Source: Entomortierella parvispora E1425 (taxonomy: Eukaryota > Fungi > Mortierellomycota). From it: a stretch of DNA of 64,000 bases. Shown in pieces: positions 17,440 to 59,610 of the stretch (position 1 is its first letter; each line of letters opens with the position of its first letter). Location of the stretch: positions 310,001 to 374,000 of the forward strand of contig BQFW01000006.1 of the NCBI GenBank assembly GCA_020891255.1, given 5' to 3'. The notes below the pieces were generated by a model, which ran no database searches, was not told where the DNA came from, and saw only the letters and a program-made list of their open reading frames with translations. The position numbers and the translations under genes are program-made.

Positions 17440-20400
17440 ATGGCTCTTGTTATCCTTTGGAATAGGTTCAACATGCCTCTTTCCGCTGAAAATGCTTTGG
17501 AAAAGGCCAGGATCGAAATCGAATCAGCTCGAAAGGCTCGTGGTTCAAAACGAACCATCAAAAAACACTACAGAGCTGTCAAGAAAATCCTCAGTGATGT
17601 TGATTCTACTACAGCGGATACTGCATCTTTGAAGGGAATGATTACCTCATACCAGGACCTTGCCGCCATACTAAGTCAGTCGGGAGACCAGGGAAGGGCG
17701 ACCAAGTGTGAACTGAGAGGGGGCGTTCTGAAGTAAGTTCATCCTCCTATTCATCATACCTGAGTTGCCTGCGGAACTTCTAACTGCTCAACGTTACCTT
17801 CAGGCAAGAGTTTGACAAGAGAATGAGGACCAATGCAGCTACCATCTCTGCGTCGTTAGTGGGGCCCGGATTCTCTTCGGCAATGCAGGCAGGAGTCGTT
17901 CAATTGAACTCTTCAGAAGTCAGATCTTCGTTGTCAAGAACCATCACTCCCACCGCAACCACTATCAGCACTTCCCCCGTGCCTCAACTGCCAGCCCTAC
18001 CTATCCCACAGACTATAATCTCTGTCTCGGTAGCCCACGCTATCGCGTCATCTCCGCCACTCTTTAGCAAGGATGTGCGCCCCAAGCCCTACATCTGCCC
18101 CCTGCCTGGTCCAGGCGAGCCACTACAATCTACCCATCAACTTGCCTACTGCCTCGCGCTGCTACAGCCCTCAGTTCAAGAGAATGATATCCCTCCAAAT
18201 GCTCTCCAATGGCGACGCTGCACATTGGAAAACGCGGATGAGAAGTACCGCTTAGAGAGCTTGGCTGTAGAAACCATCAATGCATTTGCCAAGGATGCTA
18301 TGAAAGATGCCGCTACAGTTGCAGAAGTTGTTCGGTTGGCCCCTGTGCTCAATAGTGATCACTCTCGGTTTCTTCTCAAGATATTCATCGACACCGTTAA
18401 TCAATCCGAGATTCTGCAACTGCACTCACTGGAAGGACTGGCTAAGGTCATTCAAGGAGCAGCCCCAGGATCTATCGACTCTGGCGATCTTGTCAACATC
18501 CTTCGGTCTCTTCACAGGCGACTCGGATCTACCCATTCAGAAAGTCATCATAACCAATACTTGATGGCTGCAGTTTCGCGAGTTTTGGATGCCATGGCAG
18601 ATGCTCATGTCAGAGATGTCGATCGCATCAACCTCCATGAACCCCTGACGGACCTTCTTCGAGAATCAGAGTCAAGTGAGAATCCGTATCTGACCTTTCA
18701 AGCTGCGTATGCCACCCAGGCGCTCTTGAATGTGTCTGATGATGACAACATTTGGCGAGCAGGATTCAGGCGGGGATGCCTAGTACTGAAAGGCGGTGCA
18801 GGATTCGCCAAGATGCCTGACCTGACAGAGATAGCAGACGCTCTCGAAGGTTTGGAGAAACTCTACCAAGTCGGCAAAGGAGGTGCCAGGGTATTCAAGA
18901 CTATATGGGAAGCGATCAAGTACCGTGAAAGCCCCACATTCACAGTGGAAGAAGGTCTGAAGTTCAGGAGAGCCTGGTATCGCGCCATCCGTACCGCAGA
19001 AGTGTAGATTCGGGCGGGCCAACTTGTAAAGTTTAAGGACCTGGTGACGACCGTACAATGCCGACACCAGCCCATGTTCCAGTGGGGAATTTGTGAGCTG
19101 CTTGGACAATTCGCGGCCGAAACTCAATGGGATGAAGAGGCGCGGCGAGAAGCAATCACCTTCATTACAGCTATCTACAAGGACGAGGAGGGGCGCAAAG
19201 GACAAAGGAAGATTGGTCAGGTCGTTTTCGACGTGCTCACTAACTGGACCTCCAACAATGGCACGTGTGTTGAAGGTATGTCAACTTCGTGGTCTATTCA
19301 TTTATTCATGCTGCCGATCGGAGTACCTGACTCTGACTCCCTTTTTTTTTTACTCAAGTGATTTCAGTTGCCAAGCCCTTGCTGGAAAAGATGGCGAAAC
19401 GGGATACAACGCTTAAGCTACTCGCCGACCTACAATCGCCACCTTGGATGAACACTCAGTCCGAAGAGTTGACTGGGAGTAGCACCACGAAAGTTACACT
19501 GCTGAAGACTGTTCAGGATCGAACTAGTCGACATGCAAAGCTCAAAAATCTACCCGATCTTCCCCCGCAGCCCAACCTCGATGACATTCAGTGTGCACTC
19601 AAGACATACCACGCACCAGATCTCTTTATCATGAGAGTTTCAGGAAAGAGACTGGATTTGGAGACCTGTTTCGTCAATCTCGCAATTGTAGAGGCGCCAG
19701 ACAATCGGGAGATGGAGAAACAAGATCTCCAGGAGCAAGCTGCTATCTTTCATAGGATTCCGAGTTTCGAAAGCGTGAACGCGAATACTCAATCGTTGAT
19801 CCCACTGGAACAACTTTTCGACAAACGCAACCTACAGGATGGAGAGGAGGCAATTCCTAAGCGAATCTTGGTGCAGGGTCGAGCAGGCATCGGCAAAACA
19901 ACGCTCTGTAAGAAACTAGTCCATGCGCATCAGAGTGGACTATGGAGGGATCTATTCGATACCGTAGTGTGGATCCCATTGCGTCAACTCAGAGGATTCA
20001 AGAGCAGCACCCTGGAATCTTTATTTCGCGAAAGAGTTTTCCACGCTCAGAATCGCGACCGAGAACAGGAGGCATTGGCCTGTGCTCTTATGACTTGCGC
20101 TGAAAAGGGTAGAGTTCTTTTCATCTTGGACGGTCTGGACGAGGTTGTAACCGATGCAGAGGGCGATGAAAGTAGAACCTTCAGATCGTTCTTGAAGGTC
20201 CTGCTTTCTCAGCAACATGTCGTTATCACCTCCAGGCCCTCTGGTGTGGACAGCGGGCTATTACCGCCAATTGATCTGGAGCTTGAAACCATTGGATTCA
20301 GTCAACAGAATGTCAACGACTTTTTGGTCAAGGTGCTTGAGCCAGAAGCCGTGAAAACGGTCCAGGACTTCATTCAGCGGACGCCATTGATCCGAGGACT

Positions 20401-23400
20401 CGTCAATATCCCAGTGCAGCTTGATGTGATCTGCTTCAGTTGGGACTCGCTTCCAAAAGATGGCCCGCCGATCACCATGACAGGACTATATCAGCTGATG
20501 GTCTGGAAACTGTGGTGCAAGGATGCTCTCCGTCTAAAAAAGATTGCTGGTGTTATGACAGAGCGACAGATCGGCAGATCCAAAGCCAAGGAGATCAACG
20601 ACCTAATGGCTACCGAACTGCAACATCTCGGATATCTCGCGTTCAAAGGGTTGAGCAACAATCATCAAATCGAATTCGATGAAGACGCCCTTGTTAGTGC
20701 GTTTGGCGATCTTGAGTACCGTACAGCAGACAACCGCCGACTTTTATCTCCTCAGGTCGTTGAAGTTATGAAGCAAACATCATTTTTGCATACGGCCGAT
20801 GTCGGCCTGGACTCTATCGACGCCGATTCTCCACAGGCCTGGCATTTTCTGCATCTGACGTTTCAGGAATATTTTGCAGCAACATGGATCGTCCGCCATT
20901 TTCACCGTCAACCACAGTGTAGCACATCTGGCATGATGACCACAAGGAAGATGACGGAGTTCATTCACCAACACAAGTACAACCCTCAGTATGAGATTGT
21001 GTGGACAATGGTAGCAGGATTGCTCGATGGAGAGCCGTTGAACTATTTCTTCGATCTTTTGCAGCGAACCCCGCGCGATTTGATTGGGGGACGCCATCAG
21101 CAGGTGCTCGCGACCTGCTTGGAGGAGGCCCGTGATCGATTGGACTCAGCGGTCGCGTCAGATTTGGATTCGGAACTGGCCAACTGGCTACACTTTGAGA
21201 TGAAACTGCGTCAACACAAAGATAACAGCAGGAGCATGCTAGGCAGTCGATTGTCATTCCCGGAGGACTCTTTATTTGCGACATTGAGTTCAGTAAGCCA
21301 ATGGAAAACTACACTCATACATACTCTGAGGGCGCGACGCGTACTATCAGATTCAGCCTTCCAGTTCCTCCTAAGTGCTCTCAAGGATGAAGTCAAGGAA
21401 GTCAGGTCTTCAGCAGCATCAGCGTTGAGTAGCCAGTCCGCGTTACCAGAATCAGTCATCCAGTGTCTCATTGATACAATGAATGATAAAGCAAAGGATA
21501 TCAGGTCCTCAGCGGCTACAGTCTTGAGTAAACAGTCTGCTTTGCCGGAATCAGCCATTCAGTCCCTCATTTCTGCACTCAGTGGTAATGTCAAAGACGT
21601 CGTGTTGGCATCAAAATCAATATTGGCCAAGCAGTCTGTGTTACCGGAGTCGGTCATCCATTCTCTCACCGCTGCACTCAAAGATAAAGATGGCGGTGTC
21701 AGGTTTACAGCCCTATCGGTATTGGATAACCGCTCGACACTACCCGAATCAATCATCTTGCCCATCATCGCTGCACTCAAGGATGATCATTGGAAAGTTA
21801 GGTCGTCAGCAGCGTCGGTATTAGGCAACCAGCCTGTGTTGTCGGAGTCAGCCATCCTTTCCCTCATTGCTACTCTGAAGGATGACAATCGGAAAGTCAA
21901 GACTGCTGCAGCGTCGGCATTGAGCAACCATTCGACATTTCCAGAGTCAGCCATTGAACCCCTTATTACGACGCTCAGGAATGAGGACAGTAATGTCAGG
22001 TCAACAGTAGGATCGATATTGGGCAAACAAATCGTGTTGTCTGAGTCAGCCTTCCAGTCTCTCATTGCTTTACTCACGGACGCCAATAGCGACATCAGGA
22101 CTCTAGTAGGATCGATATTGGACAGGAGATCTGATTTATCGGAATCAGCGTTTCAATCCCTCACAGCTATCCTAAAGGATGGAACAAAAAATGCCAGGAT
22201 TTCAGCTGCAATGGTATTGCGCAACCAGTCTGGGCTGTCAGGACCAGTTATCCTTTCTCTCATTGCAGCACTTAAGGATGAAGAGAGGAGGGTCGGCGGC
22301 AATGCTGTATCGGCCTTGAAAAAGCAGTCGAAGTTTCCGGAATATGTCATTGAGCCACTCATTGTTGCAATTAAGAATGACGATTCTTACATCAGGGGCG
22401 AAGTATTGTCGGTATTAAACAACTTGCCTGCATTCTCAGAATCAGCCCTCCTTTTCGCCACTGCAGCACTCAAAGGCGAACATGGCTATCCCAGGTCTTT
22501 CTCTTCACTCCGATCGATCCTAGGCAAACAGCCGGCGTTACCAAAGTCAGTCATCCAGTCCCTTGCGGCTATAGTAAAGAGCGGAGAAAGCTACGAAAAA
22601 TCCCTAGCAGCAGGGATTCTTTGCGAGCAATCTAAGCTCCCAGAGTCCACCATCCAGCCACTCATTGCTCTACTTAGGAGCGAGGAGCGTTATATCAGGG
22701 ATGAAGTTGCATCGGCCTTGGGTAATCACCCTGCGCTTCCGGAATCACTCATTCAGTCCCTCACTTCTCTACTCAATGATGACAACGAGTTTGTCGGATC
22801 TTCGGCCGCAGTGTCATTGGGCAAGCAATCTACGTTATCGGAGCCGGCCCTCCATGCCCTCATTACTTCACTCAGACTCCGCCACTGGAGAGTCAGGTCC
22901 TCAGCTGCATGGGCTCTGGGCGAGCAGTCCGCGCTACCGGAATCGGCCGTCCCGTTCCTTGTTGCTGTACTTAAGGATGACAATGGCAGTGTCAGGTCAG
23001 CAGCTGCGCGTGCATTGAGCAAGCAGACAATTTCTCACGCCTCAGCCATCCGACCCTTCGTTGGTGCACTCAGGGATGATGATTTAAATGTCCTCAATTT
23101 TGTTGAAAAGGAATTTATCAAACGACCTGCAGTCATCGTTGCTGCACTCAAGGACGAAGATAAATCTCTCAGGTTTTCAGCTGCATTGGCGTTGAGAAAT
23201 CAATCCGAGCTGCCAGAATCAGTCATCCATTCCCTACTTGCTGCACTCAAGGATGAGTACCACGGTGTCAGGATGTCAGCAGCAGAAGCACTAGGCAGGC
23301 AGTCAAAGTTGCCAGAGTCAGCCATTGAACCCCTCATCGCTGCACTCGGGGATGAAAACAAGTATGTCAGGTCCCCTGTTGCGATGGCATTAATCAAGCT

Positions 23401-24433
23401 ACCTGTTTTACCAGAGTCAGCTATCCCATCCGTTACCGCTGCCCTCAAGGACGAAGATAAAGATGCCAGGGAGTCCGTTGCTTCGGTATTAAGCAAACAA
23501 CCTGCGTTGCCAGAAGCAACCATCTGTGCCTTAATTGCTGCGCTCAAAGACGACCATTGGAGAGTCGGGAATTCCGCAGAATTGGCGTTGAGCAAGCAGT
23601 CCACATTGCCAGAATCGGCCATCCATTTACTCGTTGTTTTACTCAAGGATGAGGAGGACAAATTCAGGAAATCGGCGGCATCGGTGTTGAGCAAGCAATC
23701 AACATTTCCAAGGTCAGCCATTCAATTCTTCATTGCTGCGCTCAAGGAGGAGGGTAAAGCCCTCAGGTATCTAGCAGTATCGGTATTGGACAAGCAGCCA
23801 TCGTTGCACGAATCAGCCATCGAACCTCTTATTGCTTTATTCAAGGATGAAGATGAAGCTATCAGGTCTTCCGCCCGATCTGCACTAAGTAAGCAATCCG
23901 TGCTACCGGACTCTGCCCTCCAATCCCTCCTTGCTGCTCTCAGGGATGAGGATAAAAGTGTTAGGATTTCAGCAGTATCGGTATTGGACAAACATTCTAT
24001 ATTGCCAGTATCAGCTATTGAACCCCTCATTGCTGCTCTCAGGGATGGCATTGAAGCTGTCAGATCTTCTGCACGATCATCACTGAGAAGGCTACCTGCA
24101 TTGCCGGAATCCGCCTTCAAGTCTCTCATCGACGCACTCTGGGTGGAGGATAAAGGTGTGAGACGTGCCGTTTCGGGAGTTCTTCGAGATCACACCCGCT
24201 CCTTGTGCAATGCACTCCCACACTTGACAGGGAGTGAGATGGCTTGTCTTTATGACAACTATCTATTTCTCTATAGTTGCAGTCATGTCATGTCTTTACA
24301 GGTTCAGGACAACATGATGGTCTTTTACACAGAGCAGGGACAGTTGCGCTTGCAGCCCTTTAATAACGAAAAGGAGCAAAGTATCAAGGCGGCCATCAGG
24401 GCCGTTCAACACAAGGCAGGGTTAAAGTCTTAA
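17440..24433 (+). pseudogene. NLR-like ARM-like N-terminus / NACHT / HEAT-repeat gene, exons 17440-17732, 17804-19275, 19359-24433, with an in-frame TAG at 19005-19007
   Basis: Walker A GRAGIGKT, Walker B LFILDGLDE, VITSRP, FLHLTFQEYFAA, then 33-aa repeats. Introns are in phase. The sequence reads through TAG in frame (AEV*IRAGQLVKFKDLVTTVQCRHQPMFQWG). Confidence 0.88.
21344..24195 (+). repeat. About 29 tandem 33-aa (99-bp) HEAT/PBS-lyase-like repeats within the NLR
   Basis: Consensus LPESAIxxLIAALKDExxxVRxSAAxxLxKQSx, counted by hand in the 1691-aa ORF. Confidence 0.92.
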
Positions 24434-56574: not shown

Positions 56575-57180
56575 TGGGTCAATCAAGGGTACCCTGCGAA
56601 AATCCTAATCGATGGTGGTGCAGAAAGTAATACTATCAGTACCTCGTTTCAAAAACGACATCAGCTTGATCGAACCTAATACCCAATTGATAGCAGAGGG
56701 CTTTATCAAGCCCAGGGCTTCTCCCTATGGAGTCCCCGTACTAGCTGTGCAGACGAAGGACGGCACACTTCGAATGTGTGTAGATTACTGTGCTTTCAGC
56801 AGTATTACCAAGAAGAACAGGCACTTGCTGCCGTGCATCGACAAGCTACTACTCGACCGTTTCCGTGGAGCTCGCTTCTACTCCAAGTTAGACTTGTTAT
56901 CCGGTTATCAGCAGCATCGTACCTTTGAGCCTCATATACACAAGACTGCCTTCCGTTATCGCCATGGTCACTTTGAGTTCAGTGTTGTCCTCTTTGGCCT
57001 TACTAACGCTCCTGCTTCGTTCTCCAATATGTTGTTGTGAGTACTCGAACCGGGTTTGGACAAATAGTTCGTTGTCTATCTCGATGACCTGTTGATCTAC
57101 ACCAAGACAAAAGAAGAACATCTGCGACACCTCCGAAGTGTGTTGACCCTACTGCACAAGAACAGCCTTGTAACAGGAAC
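56575..57180 (+). mobile_element. Ty3/gypsy LTR-retrotransposon relic (protease fragment plus RT, with stops)
   Basis: KILIDGGAESN (aspartyl protease); [54 protein letters not shown]. In-frame stops near 57037 and 57064; no LTRs seen. Confidence 0.93.
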
Positions 57181-57505
57181 ACAGTGACATCACGCGATGT
57201 GCATTGAAATCCTACTAAGGAAACCGACAATTCGAGTCCTGAACCATGCTTGCAAAATAATAAAACGCACTTCTTGTCTCCACTCCACTCTCGACACTCC
57301 TATTGCAAGCCTGTATGCAAAATTGAGCAAATGCCCCCCTGAAATATTTTGGTACTCACGAGAAGTAATTGGGACAACGAGAAGGATCTGAACTGACCCC
57401 TCCGTCTCGATCCTATAGGGACAAGCCAGAGTGGCATAGCACGGCTCCTGTCATCTTGCTTTATTGTGCTATCTGACATGCCCGCTTGACCCAAATATAC
57501 CACAG

Positions 57506-58714
57506 TTAGAGTCTAATAGCTGCCCTCAAGGCAGCATATTTTGGCGTTCCTAGACCCGTGACGGGATCCCACCCTTTGATAGCAGAGAATCCATTTGTGT
57601 TGCAGCCTGGATTGTTGCCAGAAGTAATGTCGGTCAACCCGGAAGCTCCTGCTGGGGAATAGAGAAGAGGGTTCAAAAATCCTAACCTCGGCTTTCCAGC
57701 AGATATTAATTCGTCATTGAGGAGGGCGATCACAGAGCCAAATATCAGAGCGCTGGCTTCAGTTCCATCAATCAATGTAAATTCTCCTTTGTAGGAAACG
57801 GCGATTTTTTCACCCTGCGCAGCGACGTCTGGGTATCCACGTCCAGTTGCATCATAGCGACCATGGTACTGGCCTCCAAGTGCCTTAATATACCTGGACA
57901 CAGCAGCTTTTTGGTACTGAGGTTGAGGAAAGATATTCGAAAATCCCCCAGCTGATATATCGGCCCCCACTTCTTGAATACCAGTCGTTGCACCAACAGA
58001 TGTCACGTAAGGACAGGTGGCTGGGAATGAAGGTATGAATGTGCTGCAGTTGTTGCTTGTGCTTAATCCAGCTACTCCACCATCACCAGAAGAGACGATG
58101 ATGCTAGTACCTCGCTCGCCTAACTTTTTAAAGGCATTACACAAGTTCGTGGCGGCAAGAGGTGGCACGTACATCTCATCTACGCCATAGGTGAGGATCA
58201 GAACTGAGGGAGCACTCGCCTGCTGGATCAAGGTGTTGACGAGATCAAGGTATCCAGTTGTATCATTCCTCCCCACGGAGTAGAAAGTTGTCGGTACTCC
58301 ACTCGCTAATCCAATTGTGTACTGCACATTCAGATTGGCCAATTCTCCAGGGTCGTTTTGATCATTCCGGCCTCCATCAATAGAGACCTCACTAAATGTG
58401 GGTGCTGGGTTCAAGTCGGGGCGCAAGGTCCGTAAGAAGCTGGCTAGATCTGCCCTGTTTGCGAATTCGTTCAGAAAGCCAGCAACTGCGATGGTATTGC
58501 TTGCTTGAGTGGCCCTGGTTTTTGGGATGCCGTAAAGTGCTTGGATACAGGCTGGGGTCACATGATTATTGCAACTCTGGGGAGGTCGTCTCTTGAGGAG
58601 TCTCGAAGTTGCCTGAGTGAATTCTGCGTGAGAAGATGGGCTAGTGGCAGGAAATGCGAGGACGCAATGGAGGCCAATGGCTAACAGGAAGTATATAAGG
58701 GCAGGAGATGGCAT
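57506..58714 (-). CDS. Secreted S53 sedolisin/tripeptidyl-peptidase-fold protein, predicted catalytically inactive, no activation pro-domain, intronless
   Basis: Signal peptide, LLKRR site, VTPACIQALYGIP, SSGDGG, FPATCPYVTSVGAT, GRGYPDVAAQG, LGFLNPLLY, GWDPVTGLGTP. Catalytic motifs are altered (GELANLNVQY, GTEASAL). Confidence 0.92.
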   Translation of the reverse strand: MPSPALIYFLLAIGLHCVLAFPATSPSSHAEFTQATSRLLKRRPPQSCNNHVTPACIQALYGIPKTRATQASNTIAVAGFLNEFANRADLASFLRTLRPDLNPAPTFSEVSIDGGRNDQNDPGELANLNVQYTIGLASGVPTTFYSVGRNDTTGYLDLVNTLIQQASAPSVLILTYGVDEMYVPPLAATNLCNAFKKLGERGTSIIVSSGDGGVAGLSTSNNCSTFIPSFPATCPYVTSVGATTGIQEVGADISAGGFSNIFPQPQYQKAAVSRYIKALGGQYHGRYDATGRGYPDVAAQGEKIAVSYKGEFTLIDGTEASALIFGSVIALLNDELISAGKPRLGFLNPLLYSPAGASGLTDITSGNNPGCNTNGFSAIKGWDPVTGLGTPKYAALRAAIRL

Positions 58715-59610
58715 GATACGAAATGAATGTTCTCAGTGAGTGTGATTGGAGAGTAGAAGGTCAGAAGATTGATGCTTGAACAAGGCGTTAGACCAGGCGG
58801 CGTCGGCATGTAAACTTTTATATATCCGTTGACCACAGATCTTCCAACCTGTACTCAACTTGCGTTACTAAAAGAGAATGCAGAAGACCCGGATATAGAG
58901 AAAAAGAAAAAGAGGAGGATCTTGAAAATATCGGGGTTGAACGGGGGGATAGAGAATATGTTGGCGGAGGAAGGCGGAAGGGACAAAGAAACAGTAGAGA
59001 GACAGAAAAAAGATGTCAAAGGAGGGACAGAAAAAATAAGGTTTGAGATAAAAAAAGGATATGACGATTTTACTTCACACCTGTACTTTTTAGGTTCGGA
59101 ATCTTGTTGCCTGAAGTTGGAACAGTTTTCACATCCTCACCTTTTTTTCCGAGATGCTTCTGGGAGGGATGCAATTGCTTTTGTTCTTTTGCAAAGAACT
59201 CTATTGAAGCATGGGGTCAGCGAATTGCATGGGAGACCGGGCGATCCACTCCGGTGTCAGCTCCAACTTTGCGATAACAAAAACATTGGAGGTCGTGATA
59301 TTCATTTCCTGAAGGAAAGGGTGGTAGATGATGCTGAACTTGTGGCACAGGGAAGGGATCGCAGTGCCGTTTGGCAATCTGCAAGTTCATGTTCGCGCCC
59401 GTGTGGTTGTAGAACGACGATATCCATATTTGAGATTCAAGGGGTAAAGAGGAGGTGCAATTGGCAAGTGAGGATTTTCAACTTGAAAACAAGTAAGGCT
59501 CTATGCATTGTCTCCCCACGATGCAAAAGGGTGACGGATCTCTAATAAATACTCACCTTCCTTGTCTTCACTTTCAAAATTCAAGCTGAAACTCCATGCA
59601 TTGTTAATTT

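Follow-up and report, generated by a model that had tools for sequence, protein, structure and literature searches.

Sedolisins (MEROPS family S53, the tripeptidyl-peptidase type) are thought to need a prodomain for folding and a Ser-Glu-Asp triad for action. Both in S53 and in the S8 subtilases, the prodomain is seen as an intramolecular chaperone (PMC6278154; PMC7200643). In S8, pseudoproteases have been described in Clostridioides difficile, namely CspC and CspA, in which triad residues are substituted and the protein serves in sensing and binding rather than cleavage (PMC7200643, PMC6636752); in these Csp proteins the prodomain stays uncleaved, and CspC depends on it in cis (PMC7200643). 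For S53, the main survey of fungal sedolisins excluded genes taken for pseudogenes or faulty gene models, and no member that is inactive or devoid of a prodomain is described there (PMC6278154). Homologs that were probably inactive were also set aside in a survey of fungal serine proteases (PMC5567314), and we found no report of a pseudo-sedolisin in open-access papers and preprints. Here we analyze a gene in a 64-kb stretch of the genome of Entomortierella parvispora E1425 (contig BQFW01000006.1, positions 310,001 to 374,000; hereafter, the window). In our reading it probably encodes a secreted pseudo-protease of the sedolisin fold, which is maintained by selection, is non-catalytic, and is predicted to act by binding.

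The gene is the single unbroken open reading frame (ORF) at 57506-58714 in the ORF listing of the window, on the minus strand, and its frame is open for just 5-6 codons 5' of the ATG (408 codons in all). The first-pass annotation, made from the letters of the window, had described it as an intact frame free of stops, frameshifts and introns, and this description holds. When the encoded protein was compared with the PDB using phmmer, residues 37-397 aligned to human TPP1 (3edy/3ee6; E = 5e-53), and a kumamolisin was also matched (E = 1e-24). A Pfam scan of the protein returned only S8, below threshold, and no Pro-kuma_activ prodomain (PF09286). An AlphaFold2 model based on an alignment of 120 sequences has a predicted local distance difference test score (pLDDT) of 90.4 and a predicted template-modeling score (pTM) of 0.88, with disorder confined to residues 1-40; its top Foldseek matches are TPP1 (E = 1e-30) and kumamolisins (template-modeling score 0.83-0.86).

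In the alignment with TPP1, the motif G-I-E-A-S-L-D is matched by G-E-L-A-N-L-N, and GTSAS by GTEAS. The altered motifs GELANLN and GTEASAL reported in the first pass are therefore real, and their coordinates were right to within one codon, in that 58345-58328 spans E124-N129 while the Gly of the motif sits at 58348-58346. That is, all three residues of the triad are replaced (Table 1). The sequence flanking Glu319 is altered as well, with Pro323 changed to Leu and Ala326 to Gly. Glu319 is encoded by GAA, which is indeed at least two base changes away from every Ser codon. The elements said to be kept, i.e., the S-G-D motif, the cysteines and the Ca-binding loop, are all found in the alignment: six cysteines are retained in the catalytic domain, and Asp362 and Asp383, which match D517 and D543 of TPP1, are invariant or nearly so in an alignment of 120 homologs. 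The protein thus has the fold, the homology, the oxyanion Asp and the Ca site of S53, and lacks both the Ser-Glu-Asp triad and the prodomain.

The distribution of the changes is informative. We considered as family-conserved those positions whose conservation among 114 canonical homologs reaches 95% or more, which gives 119 positions. The window protein is unchanged at 111 of them (93%), and differs at eight, namely E125L, D129N, F155Y, S175T, V315I, S319E, P323L and A326G. Three of these eight fall in the four catalytic positions (hypergeometric P = 8e-4), and two more in the nucleophile helix. As judged from these alignments, the loss of catalytic residues is targeted, with the fold otherwise preserved, and the protein is predicted to be unable to use the Ser-Glu-Asp mechanism or to form an acyl-enzyme.

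Relatives were sought by a word-indexed search of 5.8 billion proteins. This search returned two near relatives, each with about 63% identity, from Podila epicladia and Basidiobolus meristosporus; the remaining matches are full-length pro-sedolisins, with 50-61% identity. The Podila ortholog (P0002, 404 amino acids) is intronless and has no prodomain; its N-terminus, including the signal peptide, is near-identical to that of the window protein, and its catalytic positions read Val/Asn/Asn/Glu. The Basidiobolus relative (392 amino acids, encoded with a single 75-bp intron) is also devoid of a prodomain, and it keeps the catalytic Glu and Ser, with the catalytic Asp changed to Gly. The codons for Asn129 and Glu319 are identical in the window and Podila genes, and those for Leu323 and Gly326 are identical in all three. 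No further member of this short clade was found by a search with the N-terminal region, by a scan of Joint Genome Institute (JGI) metagenomes (best match, 53% identity), by an exhaustive search of 1.84 billion representatives, or in the genome itself.

Maximum-likelihood trees of the catalytic domain group the window and Podila proteins with support of 99/93 to 99/95, and join Basidiobolus to them with 99/96. The short clade is nested among the S53 genes of Mortierellaceae, as sister to an active tandem pair in Mortierella sp. GBAus27b; the support for this position in three trees is 95/90, 97 (Shimodaira-Hasegawa-like approximate likelihood-ratio test, SH-aLRT) and 85/86. The two genes of the pair, P0004 (L027:2001-3680) and P0062 (L027:5074-5680), are the closest active relatives, and the branch of P0062 is much the longer. 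Because the three short proteins form one clade, their architecture is best explained by one ancestral internal deletion, which took out the prodomain of about 160 residues and spared both the signal peptide and the junction with its dibasic site. The catalytic Asp was lost on the stem of the clade, and the Glu and Ser afterwards, on the Mortierellaceae branch.

The gene is under purifying selection, and is not a decaying pseudogene. Pairwise comparison of the window and Podila genes gave a nonsynonymous divergence (dN) of 0.27-0.30 and a synonymous divergence (dS) of 0.84-1.07, with a ratio (omega) of 0.25-0.35. Under a maximum-likelihood codon model (GY+F3X4), omega is 0.234 in the three short genes, compared with 0.106 in three S53 genes of active Mortierellaceae enzymes. 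When omega is fixed at 1, the fit worsens by 92 log-likelihood units, and neutrality is rejected (likelihood-ratio test, 2dlnL = 185, p = 5e-42). The terminal branch of the window gene, with 0.21-0.25 substitutions per site, is short like those of the active enzymes; that of Podila is about three times longer. The first-pass annotation had proposed looking for homologs that share the substitutions, with dN/dS below 1, and both are found, in that Podila has the same Asn and Glu and omega is 0.23. Loss of the triad, purifying selection and an ortholog with the same substitutions are together what is expected of a pseudoenzyme.

The absence of a prodomain, also claimed at first reading, is borne out in the protein, in the window and in the genome, which comprises 38.9 Mb in 20 contigs. 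No match was obtained when eight Mortierellaceae prodomains were compared with the window by tblastn, and the Pfam model of Pro-kuma_activ has no match in the whole genome. Nor was a second S53 locus found there with the window protein, two active Mortierellaceae S53 proteins, the hidden Markov model of the family, or the Pfam model of the prodomain as queries. S8 subtilases, in contrast, are plentiful in the same genome, with 37 exon-level matches that correspond to about 20 or more genes. The proposed layout, in which a signal peptide leads through a linker and a KRR site directly into the fold, is correct except for the length of the linker, which is 23 residues rather than about 20. By inspection, the signal peptide has its hydrophobic core at residues 5-20 and is likely cut after Ala20; it is homologous to those of full-length Mortierellaceae S53 proteins, as indicated by weak tblastn similarity to P0006 and P0052 at their N-termini. 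Every Mortierellaceae S53 protein examined, whether active or inactive, has a (K/R)-R dibasic site directly in front of its catalytic domain. The features of the locus are collected in Table 1.

Table 1. Features of the pseudo-sedolisin locus, with positions in the window.
Feature	Position	Strand	Remarks
Coding sequence of prodomain-less sedolisin homolog	57506..58714	-	complete, intronless; 402 aa plus stop codon at 57508-57506
Predicted signal peptide, residues 1-20	58655..58714	-	by inspection: hydrophobic core, V-L-A before the cut
Linker, residues 21-43 (23 aa)	58586..58654	-	remnant of the prodomain-catalytic junction; Kex2-type K41-R42-R43 at 58594-58586
Sedolisin (S53) catalytic-domain fold, residues 44-402	57509..58585	-	PDB phmmer, AlphaFold2, Foldseek
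Leu125 in place of catalytic Glu	58340..58342	-	TPP1 alignment and homolog alignments
Asn129 in place of catalytic Asp	58328..58330	-	codon AAT, identical in Podila
Asp211 of S-G-D, oxyanion-hole Asp, kept	58082..58084	-	TPP1 alignment; Asn in Podila
Glu319 in place of nucleophile Ser	57758..57760	-	codon GAA, identical in Podila
C-terminal Ca-binding region	57566..57631	-	Asp362 (57631-57629) and Asp383 (57568-57566) kept
TATA-like box TATATAAAAG, 101-110 nt 5' of ATG	58815..58824	-	read from sequence; putative function
AATAAA polyadenylation-like signal, about 40 nt past the stop codon	57460..57465	-	read from sequence; putative function

These results suggest how the protein may work. The signal peptide would be removed, and a probable Kex2-type cut would follow after K41-R42(-R43), releasing a protein whose substrate cleft is open, with no prodomain occupying it. 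Since no acyl-enzyme could be formed, this protein would act by binding and not by cutting, and its likeliest ligands would be peptides or free N-termini that it meets outside the cell or along the secretory pathway. Deletion of the prodomain fits such a role. A dead pro-sedolisin could not process itself, and its prodomain would therefore stay and block the cleft; with the prodomain deleted, the cleft would be left open to peptides or N-termini.

Several points weigh against a selected, purely binding pseudo-protease. The domain would have to fold without the prodomain that is seen as its chaperone, a point on which an AlphaFold model has no bearing. Omega is roughly double the value in the active relatives, and constraint is therefore somewhat relaxed. 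Because three members of the clade are known, the selection tests rest on few and fairly diverged sequences, with dS near or above 1. Lastly, the replacement of the nucleophile Ser by Glu is recurrent, and could signal residual or new chemistry.

This recurrence was assessed in a sample of 339 fungal S53 catalytic domains, of which 296 are canonical. On the tree of these domains the non-canonical state requires at least 21 changes, a few of the non-canonical cases being gapped at catalytic columns and thus possible gene-model errors. Where the nucleophile Ser has been replaced, it is most often by Glu, which is found in 11 sequences and accounts for at least six gains among at least 16 losses of Ser. 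No Ser codon reaches Glu by one mutation. The lineages with Glu are the Mortierellaceae short clade, Clathrus columnatus (P0139), Hysterangium (P0290), Armillaria fumosa and A. borealis, Mycena latifolia, and Mycena filopes; the Ser-to-Glu proteins from fungi other than those of the short clade are P0139, P0290, P0297, P0310, P0334 and P0158. As reconstructed on this tree, the replacement has at least five to six independent origins in fungi. In Mycena latifolia the site reads E-D-D-E, i.e., Glu is present with all other catalytic residues kept. The protein of Clathrus columnatus has Val/Asn/Asn/Glu exactly as in Podila, together with a prodomain, and is placed among the S53 proteins of Clathrus and other Phallomycetidae (98/99 and 96/96). 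On a data set without the Clathrus paralogs and Phallomycetidae, an approximately unbiased (AU) test did not reject a grouping of Clathrus with the short clade (p = 0.42). From its placement with its own paralogs, the Val/Asn/Asn/Glu pattern is judged to be convergent in Podila epicladia and Clathrus columnatus. A further short protein, P0150 of Cladobotryum mycophilum (413 amino acids, annotated as tripeptidyl-peptidase SED2), has a signal peptide, just about 50 residues before the fold, and changes at all four catalytic positions; it groups with Talaromyces S53, apart from the short clade.

The recurrent Glu may make up structurally for the buried carboxylate that was lost with Glu125. Less probably, it may make a water-activating carboxyl site beside the oxyanion-hole Asp or Asn. 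Given the recurrent loss of the triad and the repeated change from Ser to Glu, a rewired site of this carboxyl type is a low-probability alternative to the binding role. In that case Glu319, next to oxyanion Asp211 (Asn in Podila and Clathrus), would activate water as in glutamic or aspartic peptidases, and the protein would still cut peptides or some other substrate at acid pH, with neither a serine nucleophile nor a prodomain inhibitor. That Glu is the most frequent replacement and that no one-step codon route leads to it speak for this idea, as do the separate gain of the Val/Asn/Asn/Glu site in P0139, the existence of variants such as that of Mycena latifolia in which every other catalytic residue is kept, and the conservation of Glu and its codon between the window and Podila genes. 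However, the window protein no longer has the catalytic Glu and Asp with which water would be positioned, the Asn at position 211 of Podila means that no common dyad is conserved within the clade, no precedent was found in the open-access literature and preprints searched, and the Glu may merely replace the carboxylate of Glu125. We therefore consider such a hydrolase unlikely. A bolder version, slightly less likely again, is that a new catalytic type has evolved repeatedly inside the sedolisin fold, with Glu working together with the oxyanion Asp or Asn, and that the window protein is an unrecognized carboxyl-type hydrolase; if this were true, the Mortierellaceae and Basidiobolus enzyme of this type would no longer need a prodomain.

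The first-pass annotation had suggested that the protein may be a peptide-binding protein, a surface protein or a decoy for the protease inhibitors of a host or competitor. In the usual sense, a dead protein would soak up inhibitors of a host or competitor aimed at sedolisins, and so shield the active enzymes. What would suit such a decoy is a fold-preserving dead homolog that is predicted to be secreted and has a largely conserved cleft, and the gene does lie in a gene-poor neighborhood with transposon remnants, a setting in which effectors are often encoded. Nevertheless, there is no active paralog in the 38.9-Mb genome, and hence no active sedolisin for it to shield, which makes the proposal improbable. 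Of the earlier suggestion of selection for a non-catalytic role with the fold preserved, then, what stands is that the gene is selected, that the fold is kept and that the Ser-Glu-Asp mechanism would be unusable; the decoy version does not.

The surroundings of the gene were also examined with regard to its origin. At 56612-57230, 280 bp past the 3' end of the gene, lies the degenerate remnant of a reverse transcriptase (RVT_1, E = 1e-4); the Basidiobolus locus has a retroelement ORF with which it shares 47% identity. The gene is bracketed by neither direct nor inverted repeats, and capture by a transposon was set aside, given that this short degenerate fragment is all that was seen on its 3' side. 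An origin as a retrocopy was likewise rejected. Active Mortierellaceae S53 genes (P0004, P0018 and P0052) are intronless too, so that the lack of introns is uninformative. There is no synteny around the gene between the window and the Podila or Basidiobolus loci. The genes that flank the Podila copy (an ion channel, a 742-residue ORF and an HSP70-like gene) occur in the same order at C7:1386770-1426937 of this genome, i.e., on another contig than the window gene, which is on C6; the gene has therefore moved in at least one lineage. For other gene pairs between this genome and Podila, dS is 0.55 and 1.40 (HSP70-like) or saturated (ion channel). The dS of 0.84-1.07 for the window gene is within this range, so that the pair looks like ordinary orthologs despite the non-syntenic loci, and a recent transfer of the gene from one of these genomes to the other is not indicated.

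The proximity of the degenerate reverse-transcriptase fragment (here taken as 56612-57040), the lack of synteny with Podila, and an omega above that of the active relatives could also be taken to mean that the gene is a neutral relic, inactivated recently and with its ORF open by chance. This is very improbable, as the inactivating substitutions are common to two species at a dS of about 1 with both ORFs intact, neutrality (omega = 1) is rejected, family-conserved positions are kept to 93%, and the terminal branch is short. Still harder to credit is a gene-model artefact, in which an upstream exon would supply the prodomain of a normal pro-sedolisin: nothing favors it except that eukaryotic genomes in general allow for it, while the ORF opens with a good signal peptide common to Podila, S53 members of the lineage are intronless, both the genome-wide Pfam search and the tblastn search of the window with eight prodomains came back empty, and the triad would be missing regardless.

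A few further observations concern the relatives and the window. The Basidiobolus gene (L004:10001-11254; MCFE01000139.1) nests inside the Mortierellaceae S53 genes (99/96) and shares the clade-specific substitution codons; its dS to the window gene is measurable, about 1.8-2.1, whereas the active Mortierellaceae S53 genes are at or past saturation. It may derive from horizontal transfer between fungal phyla, or from ancient paralogy with losses. In Mortierella alpina, the 452-residue S53 homolog P0188 has a dead site (Gln/Asn/Asp/Ala) and a partial prodomain, and forms a long branch outside the short clade. Elsewhere in the window, at 19358-24433 on the plus strand, an intronless ORF of 1691 amino acids has an NLR-like architecture, in which a NACHT/NB-ARC nucleoside triphosphatase domain precedes about 14 HEAT repeats.

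The gene shows that a sedolisin devoid of both prodomain and triad can be the sole member of its family in a fungus and be maintained by selection. It thereby offers a natural opportunity to study how a subtilase-clan domain folds independently of a prodomain, and which role secreted pseudo-proteases have in soil fungi. The repeated change from Ser to Glu across fungi is in turn a simple and testable pattern, which would reflect either structural compensation or altered chemistry.

Compared with the tripeptidyl-peptidase sedolisins (MEROPS S53), such as human TPP1, Aspergillus SedB-D and P0004 of GBAus27b, the window protein is alike in fold, S-G-D motif, cysteines and Ca site. It is 50-60% identical to the active enzymes of fungi and has the dibasic junction in common with P0004 and the other Mortierellaceae S53 proteins; unlike the sedolisins named, however, it has neither the triad nor Pro-kuma_activ, and cannot auto-activate. 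As in other dead-triad fungal S53 proteins (Ramicandelaber P0005 and P0089, Russula P0055, Clathrus P0139, Armillaria P0310 and P0334, Mycena filopes P0158, and Lactarius), catalytic residues have been lost independently, with Ser changed to Glu in several. Those proteins, though, keep the prodomain and have active paralogs alongside, and it is only in the clade of the window, Podila and Basidiobolus, and separately in Cladobotryum P0150, that the prodomain is gone. With CspC and CspA the protein shares a subtilase-clan (SB) fold with a substituted triad that is kept by selection, but these are S8 proteins of bacterial spores with the prodomain retained, whereas the window protein is a eukaryotic S53 member, predicted to be secreted, with the prodomain deleted. 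Secreted dead homologs of hydrolases that work by binding are also represented, in filamentous pathogens, by the Phytophthora decoy PsXLP1 and the protease-like glucanase inhibitor GIP1. PsXLP1 works alongside an active paralog, and the fold of GIP1 is that of chymotrypsin (S1); the single S53 locus in the 38.9-Mb genome differs from a paralogous decoy of the PsXLP1 type in having no active paralog. Thus, what sets the window gene apart from known pseudo-proteases, as far as its sequence and that of its genome indicate, is that it encodes an S53 pseudo-protease without a prodomain, and that it is the sole member of the family in its genome.

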